Shown here piece by piece: positions 6,746-34,680 of a DNA stretch of 64,000 nt. The stretch is taken from positions 186,001-250,000 of the IMG/VR virus record IMGVR_UViG_3300032770_000001. One strand, 5' to 3'. How positions within the stretch are numbered: position 1 is the first letter of the stretch; the number at the start of each line of letters is the position of its first letter. The translations under genes were made by a program, and so were the position numbers. The notes under the pieces are model-generated. The model did not search any database. It saw nothing but the letters and a program-made list of their open reading frames with translations, and had not been told where the DNA came from.

Positions 6746-9700
6746 TCTTCCGTCCACTCCACCCAGCAATCCCCTACCGGGGTTGTGCCTACCGCGCTGA
6801 GGCGAATACCAGCAAATTCACCTGTACCGCGAAGCACCAATCCTTGCTCGTTGTTGTCTCCGAATTTCCATTCGATTTCACCCGGTTGAACGCTGACCGC
6901 AGCGGTGACAATTTCGAAGCGTTTGGAGTTCAAGATACCCGCTGAAGTCGCCGTTGTTGCTGCCGCCGACCACTGGTTGACCACAGCCGTCTGTGCTGCA
7001 TTGTTGGAGTCCAGTTTCGCAACGTTTGCAGCTTGTGAGTTCGGCGTGCCGCCCGTCAGAGCCGAATAACGAAGCAACTGGATATCGCAAATCGTACCAG
7101 TCGCAGCCGATGCACTGAAGACGATGCGCGTGATGCGGATTGTCTTAGTTGCACTTCCCGTAATAGAGACTGTGGGTGCAGTTGCCGAAGCAATTGGCGT
7201 GAAGGCAACAATACCTACGCGGTAAGTCTGCTTACGACCTTCTTGGTTGACGTACAGACCACCTGTCGAGTCCACCTGAATTGCCACTGTTTGTGCAGCG
7301 GTCGGGGCCGGGATGGTGGTGTTGTACTGACCCAAAATTGCGAGGGCGTTAGTTGGCGCTGTACCTGCCGCGACCGTCCCATCGAGTGTCGCACCCGCGT
7401 TTCCAACGATTCGAGAAGTCCAGTTGCCGGATTGCGCAGCTTGCACGGCGAAGGTTCCGGTGCCAACCACAGTCGCATTCAAGTTCGCAGCAGTTGCCTG
7501 CGAGACAGTGACGGCGTTCGTGATGCTCGTCAACGTGCCGCTGTCGAGCACAGTATGTAGGTTGGTTCCGGTCGCTTGAGCGACTGTAACGGTGCCCGTG
7601 ACGGCAGTTGTGCTGCCGGAGTCTGCGATGACGTGTAGTTGACCCGTGGTACTCGTCAAGAGCGCACGAAGGTTCGTACCATCCGTGCCGCCGATCATCA
7701 ATGCGTTGGCAGGAACCGCAGCGCCCGTGGCTCCATCAACTGCCACACCAGTATGACCTGCGATACCGACCAAAGCCTGACCAGCGGTCCCAGTCGTGGT
7801 GAGTGCTGTTGTGCCGATATAGAGCGAGGCGTTGACAGGCAATGAACCCGCAACTGCACCCGGCCCTGTGCCGAATGTGCCGGATGGAACTGATTGGGTT
7901 CCGACAAAGATTGAAGCATTGACACCCTGTACGCTGCCTGTGGGGGCGGAACCGAAAGTGCTCGGTACTGCCGTGAGTGCTGTACCAGCCACGGAAGTAT
8001 GGTCAGTACGAACTGCACCCACCGTATTGAATGAGAACGTGTTCTGCGTTGCCGTCACGTAGGTTGGGTTGGCGGTCGTGACTTGACCACCGACCTGAAT
8101 CATGTTGGCAGGCTGCGAGCCGCCGATAGCGGCATCGAGCACTGCTCCAGTGTTACCTACGATGCGGGTTGTCCAGTTACCACTCTGGGTGACCGCAGCG
8201 GTGCCCGTGACTGAAATTGGCAGCGGGTTGCTGCTTGATACTCCGACGAGATTCCCACTGGAGTTGAAGCCGACGTAATCGGCATAGCTGGGAACCGGAC
8301 TGCCTGTAGCTCCGTTAGAGGCGGCAGTAAATGTGCCGCTGACGGAATTGACGTTGACTTTAAGAATACCGTTAACGTCGGTCTGGAGAGGCACCATTGT
8401 GCCATCCGTATAGGTCGGCGGGGTGAGGTTGTATTCTGCTCCGATTGCCGTACCGATGCCGGGGAATGCTGAACCAAAGTTCGAGGATGTACCGCCGCTC
8501 GCACCCGTTGCAACGATCTTTAGGTTGCCGTTAACGTCGAACTGGAATGGCCCTGTCTGACCGTTGGTAAATGTTGGAGCAACGGTATTGTAGACACCAC
8601 CGACAATCGATGTGCTTGCAGGAGCCGTACCCGGCGTCGTGCCAGTCATGTCGGAAGCGTCTTTCGTATTGAAGGTGCCCGTCCCAGCGTTTGCCGTCAC
8701 AGTTCCGATGGCGTTTGAGCCTGCCGGAAGTGGCGTGTTCGGGCTGAGAGCAACGACCAAAGATGTGTCGGTTGTTTGTGCTGCTGTGGATACATCCTTG
8801 ACCGTGGCTTTGCGCCAATAGTATTGCCCATCCGAGATAGCTTGGTTATTGCGAGCCGTGTCACCGAGTCCGCAACCATCGACATGCAACTCTCCGGATG
8901 TGCCATTGGAGATGTTGATCGCGGTCATGTGCATCGTGCGATTGTTCGGCCCGAATGTCGCATTCGGTAAACTGGCTACGATGTTTTCCGCACGGTCGAT
9001 AGCCCAGAACGCGGTTCCCACATTCCACCACAAGTAGTAGATGTGGACATTCCCATCCATAGGCTGTACGTTAGTGCCGGAGGGAGAAAGGTCTGCAATT
9101 TGACTACGTGTAGTGCTGGTGCCGCTGTTACCGGAATACAAGACAGCGTACAGGTTACCGTCGATACCGATTTCCCAACCGATACCATCGAGAACAGGCG
9201 TTGTCAGCGTCGGTGTCGCGAGCGTGTTGCCCAGACCCCAGAAACGATAGCTGTTAGTGGTGATCGGGTTATCCAGCACAACCCCCCACGTCATGCGCAA
9301 ATGCGTTGGAGACAGGAGTGGGAAGAGTGCTTGACTTTGCAATAAGCTGTAACCATTGACGGTTGTTCCCGGTACAAGGCTGGTAAAGCGGATATCAATG
9401 CCGCCCGATGTCGGATTGCTGCCCCCACTGCCGGAGCCTACATTCCAACGGTTTGTGGTATCAAGCCCATTGCCGAAGAAGTCACTGAACAGTTGGCTAG
9501 CTTCTTGAGTAATGTTGAGTGCATTGAATGGAGAAACAGTTGCCGCAACGTCGTTAGTGCGGTACGGTCCGCTGAGTGAGAACGGCATCGGCTCATCGAA
9601 CGAATTGGTGACTTCAAGACGATCTACATCGTTGAACCAAATCCAATCAATCGATATGGTCGTGCTTCCGGATGGGATGCCCGTATTTTGAATGTAAGCA

Positions 9701-12081
9701 ACCGGGCTCATCTCCGTGTAAGGTGCAGGTAAATCGACAGAATTTGTGGCTACTACCGTATCGTCAATGGACAATTCAGCACGGTTGCCCGAAAGCCCAA
9801 TGCGGTACTTATGGTCACCGAGAAAATTTGCTCCTCCATCGAAGTTAAATGGGGTGGACTCGATCTCCGTGCCGTTAGCCGTTGTGATGAAATTACCAAC
9901 AGTCGGATCGGTTCCGGAGAATTGAATAACGGCCTGCTCCATTGCGCTCGAACCGAATTGATCTTGCAACCCAAACGTAATAATCTGATTGGCGATGGCT
10001 TGATCGATGTTCAAATAGAACTCAATCACTAACGGTAGATAGTCGGCAAGACCCGCGACGATACCCGTGGTTGCTCCGGAGGAAACGCCGGAAGAAATGT
10101 TGACGCTGGAAGTAGAGACAGTGATGCTGCCGCCCGAACCTGTCTGTGAAGCGAATAGACCCGCGACAGCGGTTGAAGGTGCTGTCGTACCCTGATATGG
10201 TGAGGCTAGCGTTAGCTGGGTATCGCTGATGACTTTAGCAACGACAACATAGTCGCTTTCCGGATCGGCGGATTTTTTGATCCAATAACCAATTTGGACT
10301 TCACTGGTAAAAGCTGTGCCGGAACCCGTAATGTTAGTGCTGCTATTGGTGAAGTTCACCGTTCCGGTCAACGTGGCGACGAGACTAGACCCATTGAAAT
10401 GGTCACGGAATGAACCCTCATCTGTGAAAACTGCCCCGCGAACAGCAAACTGACCTGCTGCGTCCACGACGGGTGGTACGATTTGACCAGTAGAATACTG
10501 AGCGCCCAGATTCGGGAAGAATCCACTTATCTGTGGCGTCTGTTCTGTGACAGTACCACTCACCACCCAAGGCGATGTTCCTTGGGTCGTCGTTACTGTT
10601 CCACTTACGGGAAGAGGAGTTTGATCGCTTGCAACGGTGACTGGCACAGAGGCAGACATTGTGGTCTGACCAAGGGCGATAGGAGTTCCGCCAATCTGCG
10701 CGATGTTCGTGCTCGCGTTATTGGGTGGGTTGACGGAAACTGCACCCCCAGCGGTGACTTTGACCGCTACATAGGAACTGCCGCCAGCCGTGTTGTGTCC
10801 GTAGAGTACCGACTGTGTGATCTGCGCGGTATCCGTGTCTTCCGGTGCCTGACCGAGGAAGTTGCGATTGATCTGTACAGCAATAGATTGCAGAATAGTC
10901 TGCACGCGGAACGCAGTTTGTGGCGTAGCTCCGTTCGTGTAGACGATTCTGAAGTATTGCGCTTGGCGTCCGAACGGTACGGAAATGGCATCGCCAGCGG
11001 AAACCGACACGCTGCTGATAATGTCCCAGTTCGTGCCATCTTCGGAGAACTGGAATTGAAGCCCGTTGACAGCCGAATCTTGATCGCTAAAAACTGATGT
11101 ACGAATGGAAGTGTACGGCAAGATATTCGTTGCTGTACCTGTGAACACCCCACCAGCACCGAGCGGGGTAGTAGTAGAATTGTTCGAGTCAACAACGCCG
11201 TCAGCCCCCACATCACCGCTGTCAACAATGACATGCTGCGGCGTAGCGAAAGCGACTGTCGGGGTGTTTTGAACGAGAACTTTAAGTTGTCCGGTACTGT
11301 CGGTACTGAACACGCGGAGGTTCGTACCGTCGCTTCCGCCTACTTGTAGAGCATTGACCGGAGCAAGCGAGCCGGGGGTTCCATTGGAAATGTCCTCCGT
11401 GGTGAACGTGCCTGTTCCGGCATTCGCTGTAATCGTACCGCTGACCACCCATGGGCTGGTGCTTTGGGTAACAGCCACAGTCGCCGGAAGCGCATCGACA
11501 GTGACATGAAGATTGGATGGGTCAAGCTGGAAAACCTCACTGATATTATTTGCCTGACCAGCTTCGAGAGTGATGGTTGCCGTGCCCGTCCAAGGTGCGG
11601 ACGTGCTGACGCGGAACATGTTCAACCCGCCAGCGTTGATCGCCCATTGACCGTTGGTGGTTGTGTTTGTGACTGCTGAACCTGTGGCGGGGAATCGCGG
11701 AAGAACGTAGGCCGGACTCCAGTTTGTGCCATCGACCGAAGCCTCAAAATTCAGGGTTCCAGTCCATGTGCCAACGACATTAAACAGAATCGTTCCCGCA
11801 CCTTGACCACTAATTGCGACATTCGATGGGCTGGCAGTGATGGTGCCTGTGACAATGCGGTCAGCGGAGGGGGCAGAAGATACAACTACGGGATGCGCAA
11901 TTGTGCCAATGACATTTGACCCATCCCACATCTGAAACTTGGCGGTGCCGTTCGTCAGGGTGGAATCCGAGGCAGGAGACACCACAGCACCAGTGATGTC
12001 GTATAGAGTAACGTGCGCTGCTTTGCTAATCGGATCAATTGTTAATTGATCTGTCGAATTGCCCGATTTAATTATTGCCAT
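6742..12081 (-). CDS. very long fibre-like virion protein (1779 aa)
   Basis: T/S/A/G-rich; FEASVDGTNW and FQFSEDGTNW modules; TGTVNFTNSSTNITGSGTAF tail-fibre-like segment; repeats shared with 3473-6298. Confidence 0.75.
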   Translation of the reverse strand: MAIIKSGNSTDQLTIDPISKAAHVTLYDITGAVVSPASDSTLTNGTAKFQMWDGSNVIGTIAHPVVVSSAPSADRIVTGTITASPSNVAISGQGAGTILFNVVGTWTGTLNFEASVDGTNWSPAYVLPRFPATGSAVTNTTTNGQWAINAGGLNMFRVSTSAPWTGTATITLEAGQANNISEVFQLDPSNLHVTVDALPATVAVTQSTSPWVVSGTITANAGTGTFTTEDISNGTPGSLAPVNALQVGGSDGTNLRVFSTDSTGQLKVLVQNTPTVAFATPQHVIVDSGDVGADGVVDSNNSTTTPLGAGGVFTGTATNILPYTSIRTSVFSDQDSAVNGLQFQFSEDGTNWDIISSVSVSAGDAISVPFGRQAQYFRIVYTNGATPQTAFRVQTILQSIAVQINRNFLGQAPEDTDTAQITQSVLYGHNTAGGSSYVAVKVTAGGAVSVNPPNNASTNIAQIGGTPIALGQTTMSASVPVTVASDQTPLPVSGTVTTTQGTSPWVVSGTVTEQTPQISGFFPNLGAQYSTGQIVPPVVDAAGQFAVRGAVFTDEGSFRDHFNGSSLVATLTGTVNFTNSSTNITGSGTAFTSEVQIGYWIKKSADPESDYVVVAKVISDTQLTLASPYQGTTAPSTAVAGLFASQTGSGGSITVSTSSVNISSGVSSGATTGIVAGLADYLPLVIEFYLNIDQAIANQIITFGLQDQFGSSAMEQAVIQFSGTDPTVGNFITTANGTEIESTPFNFDGGANFLGDHKYRIGLSGNRAELSIDDTVVATNSVDLPAPYTEMSPVAYIQNTGIPSGSTTISIDWIWFNDVDRLEVTNSFDEPMPFSLSGPYRTNDVAATVSPFNALNITQEASQLFSDFFGNGLDTTNRWNVGSGSGGSNPTSGGIDIRFTSLVPGTTVNGYSLLQSQALFPLLSPTHLRMTWGVVLDNPITTNSYRFWGLGNTLATPTLTTPVLDGIGWEIGIDGNLYAVLYSGNSGTSTTRSQIADLSPSGTNVQPMDGNVHIYYLWWNVGTAFWAIDRAENIVASLPNATFGPNNRTMHMTAINISNGTSGELHVDGCGLGDTARNNQAISDGQYYWRKATVKDVSTAAQTTDTSLVVALSPNTPLPAGSNAIGTVTANAGTGTFNTKDASDMTGTTPGTAPASTSIVGGVYNTVAPTFTNGQTGPFQFDVNGNLKIVATGASGGTSSNFGSAFPGIGTAIGAEYNLTPPTYTDGTMVPLQTDVNGILKVNVNSVSGTFTAASNGATGSPVPSYADYVGFNSSGNLVGVSSSNPLPISVTGTAAVTQSGNWTTRIVGNTGAVLDAAIGGSQPANMIQVGGQVTTANPTYVTATQNTFSFNTVGAVRTDHTSVAGTALTAVPSTFGSAPTGSVQGVNASIFVGTQSVPSGTFGTGPGAVAGSLPVNASLYIGTTALTTTGTAGQALVGIAGHTGVAVDGATGAAVPANALMIGGTDGTNLRALLTSTTGQLHVIADSGSTTAVTGTVTVAQATGTNLHTVLDSGTLTSITNAVTVSQATAANLNATVVGTGTFAVQAAQSGNWTSRIVGNAGATLDGTVAAGTAPTNALAILGQYNTTIPAPTAAQTVAIQVDSTGGLYVNQEGRKQTYRVGIVAFTPIASATAPTVSITGSATKTIRITRIVFSASAATGTICDIQLLRYSALTGGTPNSQAANVAKLDSNNAAQTAVVNQWSAAATTATSAGILNSKRFEIVTAAVSVQPGEIEWKFGDNNEQGLVLRGTGEFAGIRLSAVGTTPVGDCWVEWTEE

Positions 12082-18535: not shown

Positions 18536-18564
18536 TTGACAAACATTTTGAACTACGGTATTGG
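18536..18564 (+). promoter_or_regulatory. promoter of the structured-RNA/TerD-domain unit
   Basis: Perfect TTGACA, 17-nt spacer, then TATTGG (within the recurrent GGTATT motif); A-rich UP-like tract upstream; the -10 match is weak. Confidence 0.65.
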
Positions 18565-18631
18565 TATAGCAGAGAGATTAACGGAGCGCCCTCTTGGTCG
18601 GGGGCTTTCCACTTAAAAAGTTTTGAAGTTC

Positions 18632-18726
18632 GGGTCGGCCATATCAGCCGTTCCTTCTACATTCACTCGGACAAAGAACCCGGAGAATCTCGGCTCCGGG
18701 AAAATACGTCTGGTGATTTCCGACCC
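18632..18726 (+). ncRNA. conserved stem-loop RNA element, copy 1
   Basis: GGGTCGG/CCGACCC outer helix, CCAT/GATTT internal loop, ATCAG/CTGGT helix, TTCCTTCTAC loop, inserted hairpin 18679-18700. Confidence 0.75.
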
Positions 18727-18943
18727 AAAAATGGCCGGGGGAATCGAGAGCCCCCGGTCGAAAAGATTGTGATTGTCAGTACGACTAGCAACCGAACTGA
18801 CCCGGCCTACGGCGGTCCGCGAGGAACCGTGGGGAAATTTTGAAATAGAGCACCCAAAGCGGTCGGGTCTCGTGGGTAGCGGATGGGCAACCAAGCCGCA
18901 CAGAATCCCACCCCCGGAAACGGGGCATTGATTTTTGAAAAGC

Positions 18944-19014
18944 TTGGACGGCCATATCAGCCCTTCCTTCTACTTGACCTTTACTCAAAAATAGGTCTGA
19001 TGCTTTCCGTCCAA
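18944..19014 (+). ncRNA. conserved stem-loop RNA element, copy 2
   Basis: TTGGACGG/CCGTCCAA outer helix, CCAT/GCTTT internal loop, ATCAG/CTGAT helix, TTCCTTCTAC loop. Confidence 0.75.
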
Positions 19015-19035
19015 TTAGTTTGAAAGGATACGCCA

Positions 19036-21258
19036 ATGAGCAACAATTCGATTCTGATCCGTCGTGCAAACAAGTTCCTCGTCGAGGACAAGGGCACCAA
19101 GACCCGTGTATCCAACGCGGCTCTGGCTGCATTCAACAAGAACCTTCAGGACTTGGGTTACACCTTGTCCGCGAAGGCGATTCGCACTCTCCAGAAGCCG
19201 GGTGTGTCTGCCCCGTTCTCCGAGATCGTGGATGTCCTCAAGGAACTCCGTGGCGTCCGCAACTATCGTCCGATGTATCCGAACTTCCCGACTCAGGTCT
19301 TGGAAGCGGACGAAGCAGAGTTGTATCTGAACGCCATCTTCCACTATTTTTCTTTCGTGGTCGCCGACGCTGTGAATGATTCCAGCGTGATTTGGCTGCC
19401 GAAGTACAAGAAGGATCGTCGTGAGCCGCTGGACGAGAAGGTGCAGTTGACCGTTCTCGAAATCGGCACCGAGGACGATCTGGCAGCGATTGCGGCCCGT
19501 ATCGCGATGTCGAACACGTCCATCTCCGCGACGGACAAGGAAGACCTCCGTTCGCTCATCAAGGATGGCTACCTGCACATCGGTGCGGGTCAGGGCAAGG
19601 TCGGTAAGATTCCGAACAAGGAAAATCTCGCGGTCGTGGGTGCAGTCCTGCTGACCGAGAAGATGTCCTTCGGGTTGATTTCTGAGCAGTTCAAGACTGC
19701 CACGGATGTTCTCCGTCTCGCGACGGCGCTCTCCGATGGCGACGTGTCTCTGGCGGCTGACACCAAGTTCAAGTCGCTGCCGCGCTATATCCGCCGTGTT
19801 CTGGTTTCGATTTTGGAAGCTGCGGAGAACCGCGAAGAGGACATGCTGCGTCACGAGAATCGCTGGGTGAAGCTTGGACACTCGCTGCACATGGGCGAGT
19901 TTTACAAGCGTTTCCCGTTCTCCTACGAAGCGATGCTCAAGCTGCGCAACAAGAGCGCAATGCAGAAGGACCCGATCCGCACCTTTGGTGCGAAGGTTGA
20001 GATGGCACTTCGCGAGGGTGAAGTCCGCAAGGCGATCACCCTGTTGGCGAAGCGTCCGGGTGAGTTTGCCCGTCGTCTCGATCACCTGATGCGTCTCGAT
20101 GAAGATCGTGCTGAGGCGACCGTGGATGCATTCGAGAAGGTCGCGGATGACGTGTCCACGCCTGTGTTGTTGCAGGTGATGGCACACTTCAAGGCGCGTA
20201 ATACGTCCTCCATGCGTGTGGCGATGCCGAAGGGCTCTATCGCTAAGGTGCAGGTACTTCCTCCTACGACTTGGAAGCTGGACTATGTCCAGTGCCAGCG
20301 TGTTGCCGAAGTGTGCACCAAGGCATTGACGGCCCGTTTCTCCAAGCTGGCTCCGCTCGGCAAGGTATATGTGGACGAGAAGTTGCAGAACTACCTCGTT
20401 CCGTTCTCGCAGCGTTCCGCCAACAAGAGTCTGCGCACGATTGTGCGCGGTTCGCAGATCGATCTGGCGAAGGACAAGGACACGATCCGCTTCTTCATCT
20501 GGTGGAAGAACATCGACGACCCGGATACGAAGGCAGCGGGTTGGAGCGGCGACGGTCGCGTAGACCTCGACCTGTCCGCAGTCATCTTTGATGAGAACTG
20601 GAAGAGCCTGACCGACATCGCGTGGTACAATCTGCGTGCCGACAGCGGCTACAGCCACTTCCGCAGCTTCAAGGCGTGTCACAGCGGTGATATCACGAAC
20701 GCTCCGAAGGGTGCGTCCGAGTTCATCGACATCGATATTCCGGGTGCGGTTGCCTACGGTGCGCGTTACGTCGTAATGGACGTGCGCTGCTACACGGGGC
20801 AGAACCTCAATACCATTCCAGAGTGCTCGGCAGGCTGGATGCTTCGTGAGAAGCCGAAGTCTGGTGAAGTGTATGAGCCGAAGACTGTTGTGGACCGTAT
20901 TGACGTTGCGTCCGAAGCTACGTCGGTCATGCCTCTGGTGATCGATCTGGTTGAGCGCAAGGTCATCTGGATGGACATCGTGTCCACGAACCGTCGTGCA
21001 TACAACACGGCAGCGGGTAACCGCGAACAGGTCGCATTGCTGGCGGATGCTTTCACCAAGATTCGCAAGCCGAACCTGTACGAATTGCTCTCTGCGCACG
21101 CGAACGGGCGCGGTAAGCAGGTGTTCGATCCGGCGAAGGCGGATGTTGTATTCTCCGTTGAGTCCGGTATCCAGTTCGAACTGGACAAGATCGCTTCTGA
21201 GTACATGCTGAACGAAGCCCCGGCAAAGCCGAAGGCGAAGGCTGCCAAGAAGCGTTAA
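19036..21258 (+). CDS. large helical protein with C-terminal TerD-like domain (possible Ro60/TROVE-like N-terminus)
   Basis: AAGGA RBS; C-terminal DLDLSA, HSGDIT, SEFIDID, RYVVMDV fit TerD; N-terminal ~450 aa looks helical (TATDVLRLA...DGDVSLA); strongly biased codons. Confidence 0.7.
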   Translation: MSNNSILIRRANKFLVEDKGTKTRVSNAALAAFNKNLQDLGYTLSAKAIRTLQKPGVSAPFSEIVDVLKELRGVRNYRPMYPNFPTQVLEADEAELYLNAIFHYFSFVVADAVNDSSVIWLPKYKKDRREPLDEKVQLTVLEIGTEDDLAAIAARIAMSNTSISATDKEDLRSLIKDGYLHIGAGQGKVGKIPNKENLAVVGAVLLTEKMSFGLISEQFKTATDVLRLATALSDGDVSLAADTKFKSLPRYIRRVLVSILEAAENREEDMLRHENRWVKLGHSLHMGEFYKRFPFSYEAMLKLRNKSAMQKDPIRTFGAKVEMALREGEVRKAITLLAKRPGEFARRLDHLMRLDEDRAEATVDAFEKVADDVSTPVLLQVMAHFKARNTSSMRVAMPKGSIAKVQVLPPTTWKLDYVQCQRVAEVCTKALTARFSKLAPLGKVYVDEKLQNYLVPFSQRSANKSLRTIVRGSQIDLAKDKDTIRFFIWWKNIDDPDTKAAGWSGDGRVDLDLSAVIFDENWKSLTDIAWYNLRADSGYSHFRSFKACHSGDITNAPKGASEFIDIDIPGAVAYGARYVVMDVRCYTGQNLNTIPECSAGWMLREKPKSGEVYEPKTVVDRIDVASEATSVMPLVIDLVERKVIWMDIVSTNRRAYNTAAGNREQVALLADAFTKIRKPNLYELLSAHANGRGKQVFDPAKADVVFSVESGIQFELDKIASEYMLNEAPAKPKAKAAKKR

Positions 21259-21274: not shown

Positions 21275-21307
21275 AGGGCTCCCCCAAAATGGGAGCCCTT
21301 TCTATTT
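21275..21307 (+). terminator. rho-independent terminator
   Basis: AGGGCTCCC-7nt-GGGAGCCCT followed by TTCTATTT. Confidence 0.85.
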
Positions 21308-24736: not shown

Positions 24737-25183
24737 ATGCCTGACAAAATTACGTACCGTGGCGTCCGCAATGTTGAGGGAGACGTGTATCGCTGCTTCG
24801 TTCACCGCGAAGACAATGTCTCATCGGTCGATTACGAACTCGATCCTCGTAACGACATCTACGACCACAGCCCAACAGGGATCGCGTGGGGCTACGGCGG
24901 CAGCGGTCCGGCTCAGCTTGCGTTGGGCATTCTCGCTGACTATTTCAGTCCGGACGGCAAGAGGGTGCGTTACACCCGCCGCAACGAGTGGGACATGGAT
25001 GGTCGCGACGACCCGAATCAGAAAGCCCTCAAGCATTATCAGGAATTTAAGTGGGCAATCGTGGCGCTATTCCCAATGGATGGCGAGTGGGAGTTGCCCG
25101 GTGAGATAATTGAGAAGTTCGTCACGGGAACGCTGACGGACGAAGAGAGACGCGAGTTTCTCAAGGGTCAAGTGAATGCCTGA
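24737..25183 (+). CDS. DUF6166-like protein
   Basis: HSPTGIAWGYGGSGPAQLALGILAD signature; AGGAG RBS. Confidence 0.7.
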   Translation: MPDKITYRGVRNVEGDVYRCFVHREDNVSSVDYELDPRNDIYDHSPTGIAWGYGGSGPAQLALGILADYFSPDGKRVRYTRRNEWDMDGRDDPNQKALKHYQEFKWAIVALFPMDGEWELPGEIIEKFVTGTLTDEERREFLKGQVNA

Positions 25184-25739
25184 GACCTTACAACTGGTGT
25201 ATTGGGACAACCCGGTTCTTTCGACCGTATGCACTCCCGTCGCCGACAGTGCTTTCGGCGCTGATAAGCTGCGAGACTTTGCCGCCCGGTTGCTGGCGAC
25301 GATGGATGCCAAGAACGGCGTCGGGCTGGCGGCTCCGCAGGTCGCGGTGACTGAGCGGATGTTTGCCATGCATTTCCCGAATAGTGAGCAGGATCGGGAG
25401 CCGTGGAAGCCGATTGTGGTCATCAATCCGACCTTGGAACTGAACGGGGGTACTGTGGCGGCACGTGAAGGCTGCTTGAGTCTGCCGGGGGTGTTTGAAC
25501 AGGTTGCACGGGCTGAGAACGTGGTCATGCGCTATCGGGATGCGGACGGTGACGAATTGGTGCGGGAATTGACCGAAATCGACGCTAGAGTAGCTCAACA
25601 CGAGTTTGACCACCTGAACGGGATCATGTTCTTTGACTATTTGAATATCCGCCCGACTTACGGTCGTCGGATGTCTAAACAGGTCTCGAAACAGGTCATG
25701 CGGATGTGGGAGAAAGAACGCTCTCGACGTGGGCTGTAA
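25176..25739 (+). CDS. def: peptide deformylase
   Basis: All three motifs: GVGLAAPQV, EGCLS, QHEFDHLNG. Confidence 0.95.
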   Translation: MPETLQLVYWDNPVLSTVCTPVADSAFGADKLRDFAARLLATMDAKNGVGLAAPQVAVTERMFAMHFPNSEQDREPWKPIVVINPTLELNGGTVAAREGCLSLPGVFEQVARAENVVMRYRDADGDELVRELTEIDARVAQHEFDHLNGIMFFDYLNIRPTYGRRMSKQVSKQVMRMWEKERSRRGL

Positions 25740-25759
25740 TCTAGGGTAAGATCGGGTTC

Positions 25760-25978
25760 ATGAACAGATCAAAGGCTATAACCGCAGCGGACAATGCGAG
25801 AGCGATTTTCCAATGTTTTGCCAATGCCGTTAATGACAACGCTCTGGTAAAACCGGGGATCGGTCATGCGATCCGGGACTACGAGGATCGGTTCAAGGTG
25901 GAGTTCAATAAATTGCTCGATGCAGTCGATCTCGATAAAGATCAGATCGGCTTCCAGCGAGTGGAGTATCCGAAATGA
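25760..25978 (+). CDS. hypothetical protein
   Basis: Follows a TCGACG-17nt-TAAGAT promoter-like site; probably leaderless. Confidence 0.6.
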   Translation: MNRSKAITAADNARAIFQCFANAVNDNALVKPGIGHAIRDYEDRFKVEFNKLLDAVDLDKDQIGFQRVEYPK

Positions 25979-26160
25979 TGAATGACCGTGGGGTAGTTAA
26001 TGAACCTTCGTTTGTTCTTTTCCCCGGCGACACTGTCAGCATTGTGGTCGATACTAAGACCTATCGTGGCACGCTGATGAACGACAATGGTCGTTGGTAC
26101 GTGAAAGTGCTCGGTGCCGACCCCGGTGAAGAGAAAGAAGTGGTCATCGTTAAGCTATGA
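25975..26160 (+). CDS. hypothetical protein
   Basis: ATGA overlap, GGAG RBS. Confidence 0.55.
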   Translation: MMNDRGVVNEPSFVLFPGDTVSIVVDTKTYRGTLMNDNGRWYVKVLGADPGEEKEVVIVKL

Positions 26161-26432
26161 GAAGTGGAAAAGTCATCCACGTCTGGATTACAAAGTACGC
26201 TTTAACTCAGGGCATTTTTGAAATCGATGCCGAAGAGTGCGTGACCTCAACTGGCGAATGTCAGAACATGATCCAGAAAGTTGGTGGAGCGTATTCCGAT
26301 TATTATCATGGCGAGGGCCGGGAGTGGCATCGTACTGAAGCCGCCGCCAAAGAACATGCGAACAAGATGGTGCGAGACAAGATCGCGAGTCTGAAAAAGA
26401 GTATCGCGAAATTTGAAAAACTGGTGTTCTGA
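26157..26432 (+). CDS. hypothetical protein
   Basis: ATGA overlap; VWITKYALTQGI start typical of small phage proteins. Confidence 0.65.
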   Translation: MRSGKVIHVWITKYALTQGIFEIDAEECVTSTGECQNMIQKVGGAYSDYYHGEGREWHRTEAAAKEHANKMVRDKIASLKKSIAKFEKLVF

Positions 26433-26620
26433 TGACACGAGGAGAGAAAGTTCAATTCGCAACTGATCTCGAACTTATGCATGAACGCCCCATGCGTCTC
26501 GGTCTTTATGCAACCGGGCAGCGTATCCACAATGCGATTCGCATGGTGGGGTTTGAAATCGCCGACGACATCACAGGTTGCATCGCATACGAGGAAGCTT
26601 TAGCGGCAGCGGAGAAGTAA
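26432..26620 (+). CDS. hypothetical protein
   Basis: TGATG and TAATG overlaps. Confidence 0.55.
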   Translation: MTRGEKVQFATDLELMHERPMRLGLYATGQRIHNAIRMVGFEIADDITGCIAYEEALAAAEK

Positions 26621-27762
26621 TGGCAAACCGAGAATACAGAGAAGAGCGTTACGACTACACCGGAGGGCGTGAGCACGCCCCGGAGTTGATCGTTGCAGTC
26701 GGCATCTCCGGCTCAGGGAAATCCACGGAGATCACGCAGATGGTGAAACGGTCACAGGGTAAGACCGTCCGCTTGAACCGTGACGACATGCGCAAGATGC
26801 TTTTCTGCGGAGCCGATTGGAACAAGCGGAACGAGGATTACGTCCGCAAGGCTCAGATGGAAGCTGCACGCATCGCGCTCCAGATGGGCAAGAACGTGGT
26901 GATCGACGACACCAACTGCATCCGGCAGACCCGGCAGAAGTGGGAAGAGTTGGCGGTCGATCTGCACACGCACCTGCGCTTCCTGATCTGGCAAGTGGAC
27001 TTAAAGGTCGCTGTAGAGCGAGATGCACTTCGCGGCGTAATCTGCGAAGCCTGTAAGCGTCCTATGGGCGCAATGGTGGGCGAAGAGATCATTCGCCGCC
27101 AAGCAAAGGATTTGGGACAGTTCAGCATGAGTCACGAAGTCAAGGCAGCGACGTTGACCCGCCCCTATTGGGAGCGGCAACAGCTTCTCAAGGGAGGCTT
27201 CATCCCCCGTCTGCCCGGACGCCCGTGGATTCTGTACGATCTGGACGGTACAGTAGCGAAGCGTGGCGACCGTGGTCGGTTCGAGGAGCACAAGGTCATC
27301 CTCGATACCTACTATGACACCGTCGTGCAATGGATTCGTGCATTGCAGCCGTTCTACAACTTGGCAGCCGTCTCCGGACGGCAGGATTTCTGCGGTGATG
27401 ACACCTGCGATTGGTTGCAGGCTGGTGACGTTCCGTTTGACCGCATCATCATGCGGTACACGCGGGATAACCGCCCTGACTATCAGGTGAAGGAAGAAAT
27501 CCTGAAAGAGTTGCAGGCTGTTGTCGGTCAGTCCGTGGGTTACTTCGACTCGAACGAAGAGTTTCGCGTTCCTGACGAGGGAATCGCGTTCGTAATCGAC
27601 GACCGTCCGCAGGTAGTCAAGATGTGGCGGTCGCACGGCTTGACGGTGTTCCCGGTTCGGGGTGTGGATAAGCATACCAAGGACTGCACGGAGCAGCACA
27701 AGGACAAGCCGTGGTACAAGGACGGCTACTGCGCTGAATGCGGAGCGGTCGAGGACTTCTGA
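26620..27762 (+). CDS. pseT: polynucleotide 5'-kinase/3'-phosphatase (T4 PseT-like Pnkp)
   Basis: P-loop GISGSGKST, RDD, DDTN; HAD domain DLDGT, SGR, K, IDDRPQV; start re-called at TAATG overlap. Confidence 0.92.
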   Translation: MANREYREERYDYTGGREHAPELIVAVGISGSGKSTEITQMVKRSQGKTVRLNRDDMRKMLFCGADWNKRNEDYVRKAQMEAARIALQMGKNVVIDDTNCIRQTRQKWEELAVDLHTHLRFLIWQVDLKVAVERDALRGVICEACKRPMGAMVGEEIIRRQAKDLGQFSMSHEVKAATLTRPYWERQQLLKGGFIPRLPGRPWILYDLDGTVAKRGDRGRFEEHKVILDTYYDTVVQWIRALQPFYNLAAVSGRQDFCGDDTCDWLQAGDVPFDRIIMRYTRDNRPDYQVKEEILKELQAVVGQSVGYFDSNEEFRVPDEGIAFVIDDRPQVVKMWRSHGLTVFPVRGVDKHTKDCTEQHKDKPWYKDGYCAECGAVEDF

Positions 27763-27926
27763 TGCTGCTCGACAGTTTTAGAGGTACGGTCGAGCAGGGC
27801 TGTCCGCTGTGTCGTTGGTTTGGCATTGTCCGGGCGTTTCCAGCACATTGGAGATCGCACAGTGTGCTGGAGCGCATGGTTTATCGCTTACGCAAGCTAC
27901 GGAGGCTTCGATGGGTCGCCAAATAA
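27762..27926 (+). CDS. small hypothetical protein
   Basis: TGATG overlap, GAGG RBS, CPLC. Confidence 0.45.
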   Translation: MLLDSFRGTVEQGCPLCRWFGIVRAFPAHWRSHSVLERMVYRLRKLRRLRWVAK

Positions 27927-28198
27927 TCAAACAGCCAAACGGTCTGTTCGCCCTCTGGTCGTCCAATTCGGACAAGTTTGTCTGGATCGACGCCACGAAG
28001 CAGGAGATGATTGACGCTTTCGCTGAGGAGGCTCGAAAAGAAGCAGTCGAGCGAACCGAGGAGATTTTTGCCGAACTGGAAGCCGGGGGAAGCCCCTACT
28101 ATCAGTGGACTCAGACGTATGAAGAGGCCGTCGCCTACTACGAACGTGTCCATGGGAAAAAATTCAATCCGGAAGAAGTAGGAACAGACGATGAGTGA
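27911..28198 (+). CDS. hypothetical protein
   Basis: Start re-called behind GGAGG: MGRQIIKQPNGLFALWSS. Confidence 0.65.
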   Translation: MGRQIIKQPNGLFALWSSNSDKFVWIDATKQEMIDAFAEEARKEAVERTEEIFAELEAGGSPYYQWTQTYEEAVAYYERVHGKKFNPEEVGTDDE

Positions 28199-28466
28199 AC
28201 CGAATTTAGTCGATGCATACACGTTCCGACTGTGCGGCAAGGAATTGGAAACCTTCCTTGCGTGGGAAGAAGAGCACAACAAGACTTGCAAATATTACGA
28301 TGACGGCACGTCCCCGGTCTGCCCGTCAGGGGCGATTGGTGGGCAGATGCAGTTCTGCTTTACCAACACCGGATTGGGGACCATTGTCGTAGTCGAGTGT
28401 TTGTGTTATACCAATGATGGTGACGAACGAGGCAAAAAGAACGTCACCGACTTTGATAGCTGGTAG
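28191..28466 (+). CDS. small putative metal-binding protein (paralog of 56525-56767)
   Basis: W...H...C, F..TGLG, CLC, TDFDSW. Confidence 0.65.
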   Translation: MSEPNLVDAYTFRLCGKELETFLAWEEEHNKTCKYYDDGTSPVCPSGAIGGQMQFCFTNTGLGTIVVVECLCYTNDGDERGKKNVTDFDSW

Positions 28467-28473
28467 GTAAACT

Positions 28474-28779
28474 ATGGAAACACAGTTGTCCCCCGAAGTT
28501 GCAGTCTCGCAGCCGTCCCCCGATGATGTTGTGGTAACAGTCAGTGAGCAGGAAGAACAAGACCTGCGTTCACGTTTTACGACGTTCATCTCTTCGAACC
28601 CGACCGCCAAACGCCGCAGTGCTTTCTTAGCGGTGCGTTTCCCGTACACCGGGAAGGGTGGTTACGCAAAGCGCCGTGTTGTCCTCGATATGCTGGTTGC
28701 CGAGGGTCAGGTGCCGGAAGTGTTCGGGAGTCCTGAACTTCGCAAGCAACTTAAACAGAATGGACAAAATTCTCGATAA
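28474..28779 (+). CDS. hypothetical protein
   Basis: AGGT RBS, chain. Confidence 0.55.
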   Translation: METQLSPEVAVSQPSPDDVVVTVSEQEEQDLRSRFTTFISSNPTAKRRSAFLAVRFPYTGKGGYAKRRVVLDMLVAEGQVPEVFGSPELRKQLKQNGQNSR

Positions 28780-29146
28780 AGCTGGCGCGACCGCTTCGCT
28801 GATTTGTGCCGTGCACTGTATCAGCCTGCCGTTACTGTTCGCGGTGATCCCGGCAATAGGGCTCACGTGGCTGGATAATGTCTGGTTTGATCGAGTGTTT
28901 CTGGCGGCAGCCGTGGTGTTTGTGATTCTTGCTCATCCACGTGGGTATATAAGACACCGTCGTTGCATTCCAGCGGTGCTGGCACTCATCGGTATTGCTA
29001 CTGTGGTGTTGGCGATCTCGCTGTGGGAACAATCGGAAGCGCACCATTATCTGGTTGCATTGGGCGGCTTAACAATCGCTTCATCGCATTGGCTTAATCG
29101 GCATTTCCTGCATCACGCTTGTTGCGAGGGACATCATGGCAGATGA
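28760..29146 (+). CDS. MerC-domain membrane protein
   Basis: DKAGATASLICAVHC..LP N-terminal signature; 4 hydrophobic segments; GY.RHRR; His/Cys tail. Confidence 0.8.
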   Translation: MDKILDKAGATASLICAVHCISLPLLFAVIPAIGLTWLDNVWFDRVFLAAAVVFVILAHPRGYIRHRRCIPAVLALIGIATVVLAISLWEQSEAHHYLVALGGLTIASSHWLNRHFLHHACCEGHHGR

Positions 29147-29438
29147 GTATTATGTGCTTTCGTTGAAATGGTCGGTCGGTTCCGACTACGTCGTGTTTTG
29201 GGGACCGAATGACGGCGGCTATTTCACCAATCTTGCCGAAGCAGGACGATATTCGCAGGAGCAGATTGACGCACATCGTAGCTACTACGACAACGGCCAT
29301 ACCACCCTCGCGGTGCCATGTAGCGAGATTGACGCATTGGCATGGCGGACTGTTTTCGCTGATCGCCTGCACGACACGATTTTGAAGAATCATGGCGTGG
29401 ACTGGATGAAGGTGCTTGAAGAGCGGAGATGCGGATGA
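29136..29438 (+). CDS. hypothetical protein
   Basis: GAGGG RBS; FWGPNDGGY...AGRY motif. Confidence 0.65.
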   Translation: MADEYYVLSLKWSVGSDYVVFWGPNDGGYFTNLAEAGRYSQEQIDAHRSYYDNGHTTLAVPCSEIDALAWRTVFADRLHDTILKNHGVDWMKVLEERRCG

Positions 29439-29698
29439 GTGAAGTTACACTAACCTGCTCCCATACGATGGGGTTGGAGCGGGGGGATTTTATCACTGTC
29501 TCCGGGTTTGCAAACATAGCCAACAACGGCTCGTTCATCGTTCGCCGTGTTCGTGGCTTTGGGTTGATCGTGCAGCCAGCTTCGTTCTGGGATTATGTCC
29601 GGCACTATGCTCGACGGGTTATGACGTGGGCAAAGTGGTATTACTATGGAATATCCGACTTTGCCAACGAGTTGAGAGACTCGTGGATGGACGAATAG
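29435..29698 (+). CDS. hypothetical protein with FCCH-like beta module
   Basis: VTLT...GLERGDFITVSG...NNGSFIV. Confidence 0.55.
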   Translation: MSEVTLTCSHTMGLERGDFITVSGFANIANNGSFIVRRVRGFGLIVQPASFWDYVRHYARRVMTWAKWYYYGISDFANELRDSWMDE

Positions 29699-29705
29699 GA
29701 AATTT

Positions 29706-29876
29706 ATGGCGCAGCCGAAACGTCGAATGATACGGCAAGAGTGGTATCTTGCTTACATGCTGTGTGTGCTTTCAGGTGCCAGCTTTTTCGACGGGCACCG
29801 GATTAGCGGTGGAATTCTGTTAGGATTTTCGGTTTTGATTGTCGTTCTCTGCGATGGATTCGGAGTTCGATTGTGA
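29706..29876 (+). CDS. small membrane protein (56 aa)
   Basis: AGGA RBS; two hydrophobic stretches; below the ORF-track cutoff. Confidence 0.55.
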   Translation: MAQPKRRMIRQEWYLAYMLCVLSGASFFDGHRISGGILLGFSVLIVVLCDGFGVRL

Positions 29877-29885
29877 AAGGATACT

Positions 29886-31055
29886 ATGCCTGTTTACTTG
29901 AGAGACATTTTGCCTGTCGATTTGCTGATGAAGCACATCGAGGATGGCGTAGTCCGCAAGCAGGTACACCCTCAGTATCCTGATCTCTTCATCCTCAATT
30001 ATTCTGAACATGCCCAGTTTGGCAAGATTTGGGACAACGTCACCAACAACTGCCGTGGGCTGATCGTACACGCACCCACCGGATTGCCGGATGCGGTCGT
30101 AGTTGCACGTCCGTTCAAGAAGTTCCACAACCTGAACACGACCTACATCCCGGAGACGATGGAAGAGAATCTCCCGAAGGATGAAGTTCCGCTTGTGACC
30201 ACGAAGCTGGATGGGTCAATGGGCGTACTATACGTGTGGGACAACCTTCTTTGGATGGCAACGCGGGGCTCGTTCGCATCAGAGCAGGCGCGTTGGGCTA
30301 CGGGATGGTTACGTGCGCACTTCGAGCGTCTCGGTCAGTATCGTCCGTATCATCCTTGGTTGCCGGATACGACTCCGGTATTTGAGGTCATTTACGAAGA
30401 GAATCGAATCGTAGTGGCTTATGATTTCGAGGGTTGTGTGCTGCTCGGAATCATCAACCATGAGGACGGACGTGAGTTCCGCCGCGACTCAGTTGAACGG
30501 TTCGGTGCCATGTACGATTTCAAGGTTGTGCCGAAGTTCGACAAGTCCCTGTCGGAGTGTGTTTCAGAGAACACCCTGAACGAGGAAGGTTACGTGTTGA
30601 CCTATAGTAACGGTACTAAAGTAAAGGTCAAGTTCCTCGATTATTGCCGCCTCCACAAGGTTCTTACTGGTATGAATCCACGGGGGATATGGGAATTACT
30701 AGCCAAAAATCAGACCGAGACGGTAGAATTGATATTGAAGGACGAGAAAATGCCGGAGCAGTTCAAGGCATGGTTCTCCGGCTGGGTTGAGCACCTTCGC
30801 ACGAAGTATCAGGATATCGAACGTCGTGCGCAGGCGGTTTTTGCAACCCGCCCCTTCACTGGTAAGTGGGCGTCGGAGCCATCGCCGGAAGGCTTGAAGT
30901 TGTGGCGTAAGACGCAGGCTTTGCACTTCCAGAAGACCCCGGACTTGTGTTCGGTTCTGTTTGCGATGCTCGACGAGAAGCCGTATGCGGAGATCATCTG
31001 GGACAGACTGAAGCCGAGAGCGGATGAAAGAACGTTCAGAAAGGACGGAGAGTAA
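29886..31055 (+). CDS. RNA ligase, T4 Rnl1 family
   Basis: CRGLI, RPFKKFHN, motif I KLDGS, ATRGSF, FEVI..ENRIV, EGYV, KVK. Confidence 0.92.
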   Translation: MPVYLRDILPVDLLMKHIEDGVVRKQVHPQYPDLFILNYSEHAQFGKIWDNVTNNCRGLIVHAPTGLPDAVVVARPFKKFHNLNTTYIPETMEENLPKDEVPLVTTKLDGSMGVLYVWDNLLWMATRGSFASEQARWATGWLRAHFERLGQYRPYHPWLPDTTPVFEVIYEENRIVVAYDFEGCVLLGIINHEDGREFRRDSVERFGAMYDFKVVPKFDKSLSECVSENTLNEEGYVLTYSNGTKVKVKFLDYCRLHKVLTGMNPRGIWELLAKNQTETVELILKDEKMPEQFKAWFSGWVEHLRTKYQDIERRAQAVFATRPFTGKWASEPSPEGLKLWRKTQALHFQKTPDLCSVLFAMLDEKPYAEIIWDRLKPRADERTFRKDGE

Positions 31056-31270
31056 TGACACTGTTGAATGCACTGTTCGGATGCACGCACGGGAATTACA
31101 GTTTCCCCCGTACACCCAAGGGGCCGAAACGACCTCAGGCAGCAGCAATCACGGGCACATACGTTGTCTGTCTCGACTGCGGCAAAGAAATGCCGTATGA
31201 CATGAACGAAATGAAAATCGTGGACGCTAAGAAGCTGGACGTTTCTTGCGTCCCCGTTCTGGAAGGATAA
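31055..31270 (+). CDS. small zinc-binding protein
   Basis: LFGCTHGNYSFP...TYVVCLDCGKE.PYD. Confidence 0.7.
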   Translation: MTLLNALFGCTHGNYSFPRTPKGPKRPQAAAITGTYVVCLDCGKEMPYDMNEMKIVDAKKLDVSCVPVLEG

Positions 31271-31273
31271 CCC

Positions 31274-31316
31274 ATGAACTTGGCAGCTACAGTCGCTATG
31301 AACTTGGCAGCTACAG
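31274..31316 (+). repeat. 24-nt-period tandem duplication at gene start
   Basis: ATGAACTTGGCAGCTACAG at 31274 and 31298. Confidence 0.9.
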
Positions 31317-32605
31317 CCGTCATGAAGGAACTGCGACGGGCGGGTCATCAGGCTTACCTCGTGGGTGGTTGTGTGCGTGACATCCTTCTCCAGCGTAAGC
31401 CAAAGGATTTCGACGTAACGACTGATGCCACACCTGAGCAGGTTCAGGCTCTTTTTGAACACACGCTGGCAGTCGGTGCCTCTTTCGGTGTGGTGATTGT
31501 TCTGGTGGATGTCGATGGCGTTGACCATCAGATTGAAGTCGCCACGTTCCGAACCGATGGTCAGTATTCTGACGGTCGGCGACCGGATTCTGTCGTCTAC
31601 AGCCTGAGTGCGGAAGAGGACGTGAAGCGTCGGGACTTCACTATTAACGGTTTGTTGTGTCTCGGCGAGGCAGACACGGGCTCCGTAGCGGAGTACGAGG
31701 CCGCTCTTACGGGTGCCACAGACCGCGTCACGGTCGGCAATCATACGTTCGGAATCGTGGATCATGTCGGCGGTATCGCTGACATCCAGCGGGGAATTAT
31801 CCGTTGCATCGGCGACCCGGATGCCCGGTTCGGCGAGGACGCCTTGCGGATGCTTCGGGCGGTTCGGTTTGCTGCTCAGCTTGGCTTCGAGATCGAGAAC
31901 GCCACGTGGAGGGCAATCGAAAAGAATGCCCTCGCGATCAAGCAGGTCAGTGCGGAACGGGTTCGTGACGAACTCTTCAAGCTGTTCGCTGCTCCATTCC
32001 CGGTCGAGGGGTTGGTGCCACTGTTCAGCACCGGGCTGGCGCAGCACGTATTTCCGGTAGAGGTTGTCCGGGAATTGCGGATGGCGTACTGCTTGCGGCG
32101 ATTCGAGCGATTCAACTCTGCGCTGCCGGAAGTCGGCTTGGCGATGTTGCTCAACGACACGAACCCACGGGCGACTGTCGAACTTTGCAACGCCCTCAAG
32201 CTGCCGAACGACGTAAAGGAAGCGGTTGTGAACGGCGTGTTCTACGTCGATACGATTGCTGCCTCTCCGAAGTTCGACATGGCAACCGTTAAGCGCACGA
32301 TGCGCAAGAGGGGGATCAAGATTGCTCTGGAGTTGTTCTTGCAGGATGAAATGGTCGGCAAGACGAACCGGGGCATGGAAGAGACCATGCGCATCTATAA
32401 CCGATTCGCCAACTTGACTCCAGAAGAGATTAAGCCTGCGCCGTTTATCACTGGCGACGATTTGATCGCGAAGGGGTTGACGCCCGGACCGGAGTTCCGA
32501 CGCATCCTCGAAGACCTTGAGACTTACCAGTTGAACGGTGGAATCAAGTCTCGTGCTGATGCTGAGGAACGATTGAAATTCGTGTGGACGGGGGAGGCTA
32601 AGTAA
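31274..32605 (+). CDS. cca: class II tRNA nucleotidyltransferase (CCA-adding enzyme)
   Basis: YLVGGCVRD, DFD, EVATFR, RRDFTING, EDALRMLRAVRF; lacks the poly(A) polymerase GRRF signature; no HD domain. Confidence 0.9.
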   Translation: MNLAATVAMNLAATAVMKELRRAGHQAYLVGGCVRDILLQRKPKDFDVTTDATPEQVQALFEHTLAVGASFGVVIVLVDVDGVDHQIEVATFRTDGQYSDGRRPDSVVYSLSAEEDVKRRDFTINGLLCLGEADTGSVAEYEAALTGATDRVTVGNHTFGIVDHVGGIADIQRGIIRCIGDPDARFGEDALRMLRAVRFAAQLGFEIENATWRAIEKNALAIKQVSAERVRDELFKLFAAPFPVEGLVPLFSTGLAQHVFPVEVVRELRMAYCLRRFERFNSALPEVGLAMLLNDTNPRATVELCNALKLPNDVKEAVVNGVFYVDTIAASPKFDMATVKRTMRKRGIKIALELFLQDEMVGKTNRGMEETMRIYNRFANLTPEEIKPAPFITGDDLIAKGLTPGPEFRRILEDLETYQLNGGIKSRADAEERLKFVWTGEAK

Positions 32606-33150: not shown

Positions 33151-33201
33151 GACTCTTCCCAAAAAGTCTTTCTCGCGTTATATTCAAACAGAGGTTTAAC
33201 G

Positions 33202-33501
33202 ATGAAATTCTATCGCAACGCTTTACTGCTCGTGTTGTTCGCCATCGTGAACTACTACGGTATCCAGTACGGATTCCTCGGACTAAACACTGCTAACGAT
33301 TTCGCGTTCATTGGCGGCTTCGTCGGCCTCGTGATTTTGTTCATCACCGATGTGCTCATCATTTGGCGTGTCATCAAGACCTACGCCAAGAAAGCTGAGG
33401 ATTCACTTTGCCAAGAAAAAGCAACCCTAGCGGCGGAAGCCTCGGCTCCGTCACCGTCACCCGCTCCAACAACCCAACAAGCTTCGGAAACGTCGAAGTA
33501 A
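33202..33501 (+). CDS. membrane protein (2 TM)
   Basis: GAGG RBS; hydrophobic N-half; directly upstream of the SPFH gene. Confidence 0.65.
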   Translation: MKFYRNALLLVLFAIVNYYGIQYGFLGLNTANDFAFIGGFVGLVILFITDVLIIWRVIKTYAKKAEDSLCQEKATLAAEASAPSPSPAPTTQQASETSK

Positions 33502-33512
33502 AGGTTCCCAAA

Positions 33513-34466: not shown

Positions 34467-34468
34467 AC

Positions 34469-34666: not shown

Positions 34667-34680
34667 TCGCACTTTGGATC

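Follow-up and report, generated by a model that had tools for sequence, protein, structure and literature searches.

The open reading frame (ORF) studied here comprises 740 codons with an ATG start and occupies exactly positions 19036–21258 (+ strand) of a 64,000-nt stretch, hereafter the window, which corresponds to bases 186,001–250,000 of IMG/VR record IMGVR_UViG_3300032770_000001, a jumbo phage genome from wetland metagenomes (455,708 bp, rated complete). The encoded protein is organised into an N-terminal α/β domain (residues 1–147; 19036–19476), a basic α-solenoid resembling the HEAT-repeat ring of Ro60 (residues 148–435; 19477–20340), a linker (residues 436–475; 20341–20460), a TerD β-sandwich (residues 476–660; 20461–21015) and a C-terminal region (residues 661–740; 21016–21258) modelled as helices (663–723) followed by a disordered Lys-rich tail. 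The 500-nt gap 5′ of the gene contains no plausible ORF and holds two copies of a stem-loop RNA of ~80–110 nt, and 17 nt past the stop codon a consensus scan located a terminator-like hairpin of 9 pairs (7 G-C) with a T-rich tail (21275–21307, +). The original prediction, made from the nucleotide sequence alone, had described an Arg/Lys-rich helical part, a TerD-like domain and strongly biased codons, all of which were borne out: Lys and Arg make up 14.7% of the protein overall, the TerD fold is matched by known structures and the codon bias is the strongest among 14 long ORFs compared (effective number of codons, Nc, 36.7 vs 44–55). The solenoid is basic (isoelectric point (pI) 9.55, net charge +10) and the TerD domain is acidic (pI 4.95). 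The locus is present in 7 wetland metagenome DNA runs and in no RNA run.

Residues 1–475 were folded alone (mean predicted local distance difference test (pLDDT) score of 88.4) and compared with 48,161 representative solved chains using an aligner independent of Foldseek. All three Ro60 representatives were recovered within the top 45 chains, with the longest alignments, whereas nearly all other matches were local alignments of ~95 residues to generic HEAT repeats (model residues 316–438); two other solved chains were matched over 154–164 residues, but at a root-mean-square deviation (rmsd) of 11. No match in this search covered residues 1–147. The Ro60 alignment of the full model extends to residue 727, and the order of domains, with the ring (148–435) followed by TerD (476–660) and then by helices (663–723), is that of Ro60. 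In Ro60 of phage phiLo, the vWA domain is inserted in the HEAT-repeat domain, to which the last helix returns (PMC12135203). No vWA domain was detected in our protein by Pfam and the TerD β-sandwich occupies that position, in agreement with the earlier proposal that TerD is carried here instead of vWA. As judged from these structural models, residues 148–435 look closer to the Ro60 ring than to any other solved fold, with TerD at the vWA position.

Substantial evidence weighs against a relationship with Ro60. The original prediction envisaged a Ro60/TROVE-like ring fused to TerD, of which a resemblance to the Ro60 fold and the placement of TerD were recovered but TROVE sequence similarity was not: at E ≤1, the Pfam TROVE profile (PF05731) matched neither the protein, nor anything encoded elsewhere in the phage genome, nor any of 60 homologs, while its positive controls matched, and it gave no match at E ≤0.001 in 5 homolog-bearing bacterial genomes whose candidates were scored. 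Comparison of the helical part with Ro60 gave a divided outcome, in that the independent aligner ranked Ro60 highly but Foldseek returned nothing under E 0.06 for the N-terminal model against the PDB. Searches of the ESM Atlas by shape and by language-model features retrieved family members only and no TROVE protein. We also gathered 25 genuine TROVE-vWA proteins from bacterial genomes (the unpublished genome G053, locus L087, was omitted here and from all other alignments and supports no claim) and aligned the family with 8 and then all 25 of them using hhalign, with probabilities of 0.2–1% and E-values of 0.055–0.55. The best score (22.8 vs 15.2 and 15.7 for reversed profiles) was equalled by 2 of 20 block-shuffled templates; the corresponding alignment is colinear with the structural one. 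Since shuffled controls equal this score, by-eye motif correspondences (RLGE.LHP vs rD.l.L.HpkP) were withdrawn as evidence. TROVE homology is not demonstrated, and the ring is either a diverged TROVE homolog or a convergent look-alike. Foldseek matches of the full model to clostridial neurotoxins and Tc toxins (rmsd 30–58, probability ≤0.12) were discarded as meaningless.

The TerD fold of residues 476–660 was confirmed with Foldseek and VIA against TerD structures. The Pfam TerD profile (PF02342) does not match the protein itself and matches 10 of the 60 homologs (best E 8.4e-6), and the family profile aligns with PDB 2kxt at E 0.54, with the DLDLSA and HSGD motifs in register. Residues D510, D512, S514, G551, D552, E562 and D565 are invariant or nearly so in the family, and the acidic GEGDGDDE-type loop of 2kxt is replaced by SAPxGAxE. 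Two linker motifs, PFSQRSA (residues 456–462; 20401–20421) and RGS (residues 471–473; 20446–20454), are invariant in the 60 homologs, and confidence in the linker model is below pLDDT 50 at residues 458–468 when the N-terminal part is folded alone and mostly above 70 in the full model, where TerD is present.

A Pfam search of the 740-aa protein gave no credible match, a DRMBL match (E 0.036, under its cut-off) being set aside as chance, and PHROGs assigned the protein to the unannotated phrog_33734 (2.5e-88). The NCBIfam match is NF041916, the MXAN_6230/SCO0854 RING family (E 1.7e-123; 413.5 bits, under the 600-bit cut-off), in which residues 126–697 align with profile positions 167–758, the helical module and TerD being common to both. 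Profile positions 1–166, including the RING finger, are unmatched, no RING Pfam match (Prok-RING_4) was found on the protein, and the RING-bearing N-terminus of SCO0854-type relatives is replaced by the α/β domain, which was assigned from model secondary structure. Structural neighbours in the ESM Atlas are clusters of the RING family with template-modelling (TM) scores of 0.63–0.87. A word-based search returned >4,340 relatives, the named ones labelled ‘TerD family protein’, ‘cytoplasmic protein’ or ‘stress response protein SCP2’. They occur in at least 591 bacterial genomes (including Paenibacillus, Brevibacillus, Bacillus, Pyrinomonadaceae, Gaiellales, Gimesia, Sericytochromatia, Kapaibacteriota and Chthonomonadaceae) and in at least 126 viral contigs, many of 100–460 kb; isolated phages that carry one include Rhodococcus phage Weasels2, Mycobacterium phage WXIN and Xanthomonas phages XacN1 and Xoo-sp13. 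Of the four Bacillales homologs, two contain one in-frame stop (G781:C47:301321-303384, TAA; G765:C11:226219-228297, TGA) and could be pseudogenes, sequencing errors or cases of read-through. The Pfam description of Prok-RING_4 reportedly mentions fusion to ROT/TROVE-like repeats and TerD and predicts a role in RNA processing, and the protein architecture was probably anticipated in this way around 2011.

The two RNA copies in the gap share a 28-nt core (18633–18660 and 18946–18973), and a 24-nt core is found just twice in all 455 kb of the genome, each time close upstream of the gene. Copy 1 (18622–18734, +; covariance-model match of 86.3 bits; repeat D1, inverted repeat I4) forms helix P1 from 18632–18638 and 18720–18726 and helix P2 from 18642–18650 and 18707–18715, with the invariant loop TTCCTTCTAC at 18651–18660. 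A promoter-like site (TTGACA, 17 nt, TATTGG; 18537–18570, +) lies just past the stop of the preceding ORF, ~60 nt before this copy, and was missed by the consensus scan because its second hexamer ends in G. Between the copies, the consensus scan placed a terminator-like hairpin, CCCCGGAAACGGGG, with a T-rich tail (18912–18935, +). Copy 2 (18935–19021, +; 92.3 bits) is situated in the mRNA leader, with P1 formed by 18945–18951 and 19007–19013 and the loop TTCCTTCTAC at 18964–18973; its end is 22 nt from the ATG, with the Shine-Dalgarno sequence AAAGGA (19023–19028) following the element. Phage L131, the nearest jumbo-phage relative, with a protein 56% identical to this one, likewise has two RNA copies 5′ of the homolog with a comparable hairpin and T run between them, and its closing stems (GGCGG/CCGCC and GGTCGG/CCGACC) differ in sequence from those of the window (GGGTCGG/CCGACCC and GGACGG/CCGTCC) with pairing kept. 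The motif (A)TTTTGAA occurs four times in the gap (18545, 18620, 18837 and 18932), twice just 5′ of an RNA copy and likewise in L131, and may be a promoter or a protein-binding site.

A search of the whole phage genome recovered the two local copies and one third copy (G000:C1:132586-132679; locus L198 1501–1594), which is more divergent and located 72 kb from the gene. Its TTGACA-17-TATTGT promoter, with which the promoter-like site of copy 1 aligns, ends ~8 nt before P1, and four tRNA-Pro genes (anticodons UGG, CGG, GGG and UGG) follow ~200 nt downstream. With its own promoter and the tRNA-Pro array behind it, the third copy therefore looks like a free-standing RNA gene.

A covariance model built from four copies (two from the window and two from L131; 15 base pairs) was used to assess the distribution of the RNA. 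At E ≤1 it gave 216 matches in the window and 80 phage loci (covering 77 of the 80), and in 80 bacterial loci it gave 125 matches (77 of 80). Every one of the 341 copies, spread over 154 of the 160 loci, shares the strand of the gene, and nearly all fall no further from it than ~1 kb on the upstream side or 2 kb on the downstream side. The consensus structure consists of a 7-bp P1 (invariably ending in GG on its 5′ strand and in CC on its 3′ strand), a conserved internal loop (5′ C-UAU, 3′ UUU), a P2 of 8–9 bp and a large loop, which starts with the invariant cuUCCUUCUa (UUCCUUCU) and continues into a variable hairpin and an A-rich end, often followed by a U-rich 3′ tail. The most conserved bases are those of the single-stranded pyrimidine loop and of the internal loop in the long helix. 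Covariation is very strong in an alignment of 124 copies, itself fitted to the structure of the model: 96.7% of cells form standard pairs vs 58.6% after shuffling (0 of 500 shuffles equalled the observed value), and pairing falls to 32–52% when the 3′ partners are slid by 1–3 columns. Compensatory changes on both sides were observed in 13 of 15 pairs (719 cells), with most positions using all four Watson-Crick types, and RNAalifold, run on the same model-fitted alignment, recovered both helices with compensatory changes in 14 of 16 pairs.

Linkage to the gene was also observed at the level of whole genomes. Among 121 Bacillales genomes, the protein was found in 4 and the RNA in 4, with both in 3 and the RNA 60–415 nt from the gene; the sole RNA-only match is marginal (E 9.6e-4). 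Beside 25 genuine TROVE genes, no RNA match was obtained even with filters off. An element was located ~60 nt upstream of a true RING-type SCO0854 gene, with a weak model score and a plain stem and CUUCCUUCUC loop. No copy matched any Rfam 15 family at gathering thresholds or at E ≤1, Y RNA included, and nothing linking TerD with Ro60, Rsr or Y RNA was found in the literature searched. We considered and rejected a small peptide, MxxLPST, whose ATG is in register in many copies, because both window copies have ATA, the ATG is also missing from many Paenibacillus copies and CTT CCT TCT does not vary at its synonymous third positions. A tRNA-like T-loop in the variable region was likewise rejected as a general feature, being present in only 3 of the 124 copies.

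The arrangement of copies differs between phages and bacteria. Phage loci carry 2–7 copies, with 30 of the 79 aligned phage copies downstream of the gene and the largest arrays holding 6–7 copies, as in phage locus L175 (8247–9832). In that locus, the variable loop of one copy (9023–9141) contains a perfect T-arm-like hairpin of the tRNA kind, CAGGTTCAAATCCTG, and an Rfam tRNA-like call (8183–8250) abuts the first copy of the array. Bacterial loci mostly carry one or two copies directly upstream. At several Paenibacillus loci (L020, L036, L037, L069 and others; ~7905–8003), the proximal RNA copy sits between the strong Shine-Dalgarno sequence GAGAGGAGG, 1–2 nt before P1, and the AUG, 6–8 nt after P1, with no Shine-Dalgarno sequence beside the AUG, which suggests a split ribosome-binding site whose halves the folded element bridges.

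The gene lies in a setting of RNA repair and tRNA genes. Three enzymes are encoded 5–11 kb downstream on the same strand, namely a polynucleotide kinase-phosphatase (PNKP; 26578–27762, +; PHROG 505, 2.6e-65; Pfam HAD_PNKP and AAA_33), a T4 Rnl1-type RNA ligase (29886–31055, +; PHROG 562, 2e-57; Pfam RNA_lig_T4_1, 1.8e-16) and a CCA-adding tRNA nucleotidyltransferase (31274–32605, +; PHROG 2244, 5.6e-58; Pfam PolyA_pol, PolyA_pol_RNAbd and tRNA_NucTran2_2), which together are the classical tRNA-repair set. The same-strand block that holds them (25176–35618, +) further encodes a peptide deformylase (25176–25739), a MerC-like membrane protein (28658–29146), an SPFH/Band-7 protein (33408–34466) and a histidine phosphatase (34845–35618), and looks like an RNA-repair and translation-support island. 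In related phages the gene is found inside tRNA arrays: tRNA genes lie within 6 kb of it in 48 of 80 phage loci, with all 345 tRNAs on its strand, and the commonest protein-coding neighbour is a Thg1-like 3′-5′ nucleotidyltransferase (18 of 81 loci). The 80 bacterial loci show no conserved protein neighbour. The tRNA array beside the gene in L175 includes a CUA-anticodon tRNA (4421–4495; ‘tRNA-Pyl’ in ARAGORN), which may be an amber suppressor and a hint of stop-codon recoding. Elsewhere in the window, ORFs of 941 aa (3473–6298, −) and 1,779 aa (6742–12081, −) have no PHROG match at 1e-5.

We propose, with a probability of roughly 60%, that the gene product is the protein part of a Ro60/Y-RNA-like ribonucleoprotein, autoregulated through the RNA copy in the leader. 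The analysis itself shows the modelled domain folds, a covarying RNA linked to the gene, and a setting of RNA repair and tRNA genes; the remainder is inferred from these. Y RNAs are likewise encoded beside Ro60 genes in more than 250 bacteria and phages (PMC4201824), and Ro60 of phiLo binds phage-encoded Y-like RNAs and attenuates host PNPase (PMC12135203). Given that the RNA is kept beside one protein family, on the same strand, in several bacterial phyla and many phage lineages, direct partnership is the simplest explanation. The partner of the ring-TerD protein would be the ~80–110-nt RNA encoded beside its gene, and by analogy with the binding of the Y RNA stem by Ro60, the basic ring would bind the long terminal stem and conserved internal loop. 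The leader copy, placed 22 nt before the ATG in the window, would probably serve as an operator for translational control by the protein itself; in Paenibacillus, folding would bring the Shine-Dalgarno sequence and AUG to normal spacing, and bound protein would block the ribosome. The phage particle could act as a platform for tRNA and RNA quality control or as a decoy that blunts host ribonucleases, in either case beside PNKP, Rnl1, the CCA-adding enzyme, Thg1-like enzymes and the phage tRNA arrays. Most tentatively, TerD might stand in for the vWA metal site by offering a surface for interactions that depend on a divalent cation or a ligand.

The main rival explanation is that the RNA is a cis-acting leader, a riboswitch or attenuator often present in tandem, which senses a small ligand or ion and turns on a TerD-type stress protein whose helical domain is a protein-protein scaffold that does not bind RNA. 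TerD domains have been tied to metal or ligand binding (PMC7159879; PMC7824862), and the bacterial arrangement fits, with copies in the 80 loci almost always directly upstream, singly or as tandem pairs, the last ending a few nt before the start codon. A U-rich tract also stands behind many copies, and P1 could therefore act as a terminator stem. However, a leader does not fit the phage copies downstream of the gene, the arrays of up to 6–7 copies or the distant copy, which has its own promoter and precedes a tRNA-Pro array; a terminator-like hairpin of its own stands behind copy 1 in both the window and L131, and the conserved bases form a pyrimidine loop and an internal loop with no obvious ligand pocket. 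We regard this explanation as unlikely.

It is somewhat less likely still that the resemblance to Ro60 reflects the generic curvature of helical repeats and that the RNA is an independent regulatory small RNA (for example, one with an anti-Shine-Dalgarno-like pyrimidine loop) that is co-inherited with the protein and not bound by it. The length of the Ro60 alignments, which generic HEAT proteins do not reach, the placing of all three Ro60 representatives near the top of the search, the shared domain order and the persistence of a same-strand RNA beside one protein family across phyla and phage lineages all speak against it. The loop UUCCUUCUA (18651–18660 and 18964–18973) is complementary to purine-rich Shine-Dalgarno-like sequences and resembles the 3′-terminal CCUCCUUUCUA of Bacillus 16S rRNA, possibly by coincidence. 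A broader and equally doubtful reading envisages an undescribed and very widespread class of ribonucleoprotein (>4,300 protein clusters in several bacterial phyla and many large phages), in which UUCCUUCUA would mimic the 3′ end or anti-Shine-Dalgarno region of 16S rRNA or sponge Shine-Dalgarno sequences, the protein would use it to guard, protect or repair rRNA and tRNA ends hit by ribonuclease toxins, and phages would carry the system within their islands of tRNA and RNA-repair genes as counter-defence. A component of a Ter system for tellurite or xenobiotic resistance, used by the phage for superinfection exclusion, is very improbable: although the TerD fold is present and stand-alone TerD genes of jumbo phages have been so interpreted (PMC7824862), TerD accounts for no more than a quarter of the protein and is without the classical acidic GDGDDE-type loop, the conserved context consists of RNA and tRNA genes rather than membrane or Ter genes, and, as the original prediction had argued in setting aside tellurite resistance, no other Ter gene was seen, there being no second TerD match in the phage genome and no Ter family among the 20 neighbouring ORFs scanned (a genome-wide profile search was not made for TerB, TerC and TelA).

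For the Ro60/Y-RNA-like particle that we favour, the structural support for a Ro60-like ring and the RING-less form of the protein in phages and bacteria appear to be new, and most of all so does the partner RNA family, encountered neither in Rfam 15 nor in the literature searched. Particles of Ro60 and Y RNA are the model for RNA quality control guided by non-coding RNA, and bacterial ones are, to our knowledge, known only with TROVE-vWA proteins. Our results suggest a second, parallel system in which a Ro60-like ring is combined with TerD and has its own RNA family, with a range spanning Bacillota, Acidobacteriota, Actinomycetota, Planctomycetota, relatives of Cyanobacteria and many large phages. 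If this is correct, thousands of proteins labelled ‘TerD family’ or ‘stress response protein SCP2’ would be reassigned to RNA biology instead of metal stress, RNA families would gain a new and well-supported member with more than 300 copies in hand, the RING-bearing SCO0854 proteins would acquire an RNA context, and the tRNA/RNA-repair islands that jumbo phages use against host ribonucleases would have a further component. Direct tests are feasible in Paenibacillus, Brevibacillus and Bacillus hosts and with Rhodococcus phage Weasels2 and Xanthomonas phage XacN1.

Comparison with known systems places the locus near several of them. Classical TerD, TerE and TerZ proteins (PF02342; PDB 2kxt, 3ibz and 2qz7) are single-domain proteins of ~190 aa encoded in ter operons, whereas here TerD is one module of 740 aa, with an altered acidic Ca-binding loop and without ter neighbours. 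The MXAN_6230/SCO0854 RING family shares the central helical module, TerD and, upstream of one true member, the RNA element, and differs in the RING-bearing N-terminus, for which the phage protein has another domain. Translational operators that mimic the ligand of a protein and split ribosome-binding sites bridged by a hairpin are exemplified by the thrS operator and T4 gene 38. Our system is like these in having an RNA copy in the leader by the start codon and, in Paenibacillus, an RNA between the Shine-Dalgarno sequence and the AUG; unlike the split-site systems, the Shine-Dalgarno sequence in the window lies downstream of the element, and the regulation is one that we infer. From Y RNA, the partner RNA is set apart by the lack of a YrlA tRNA-like domain and of an Rfam match and by its invariant UUCCUUCU loop. 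Ro60/Rsr, including that of Thermus phage phiLo (PDB 9l5y; PMC12135203), is the best structural match to residues 148–435, and although our protein departs from it in the absence of TROVE sequence similarity, in carrying TerD for the vWA domain with its metal-ion-dependent adhesion site (MIDAS) and in its extra 147-residue N-terminal domain, the two have in common a non-helical domain of metal-binding type inserted near the C-terminus and followed by returning helices, small structured RNAs that carry a long terminal stem and are encoded next to the gene in the same orientation, and an occurrence in phages and in RNA-repair contexts.

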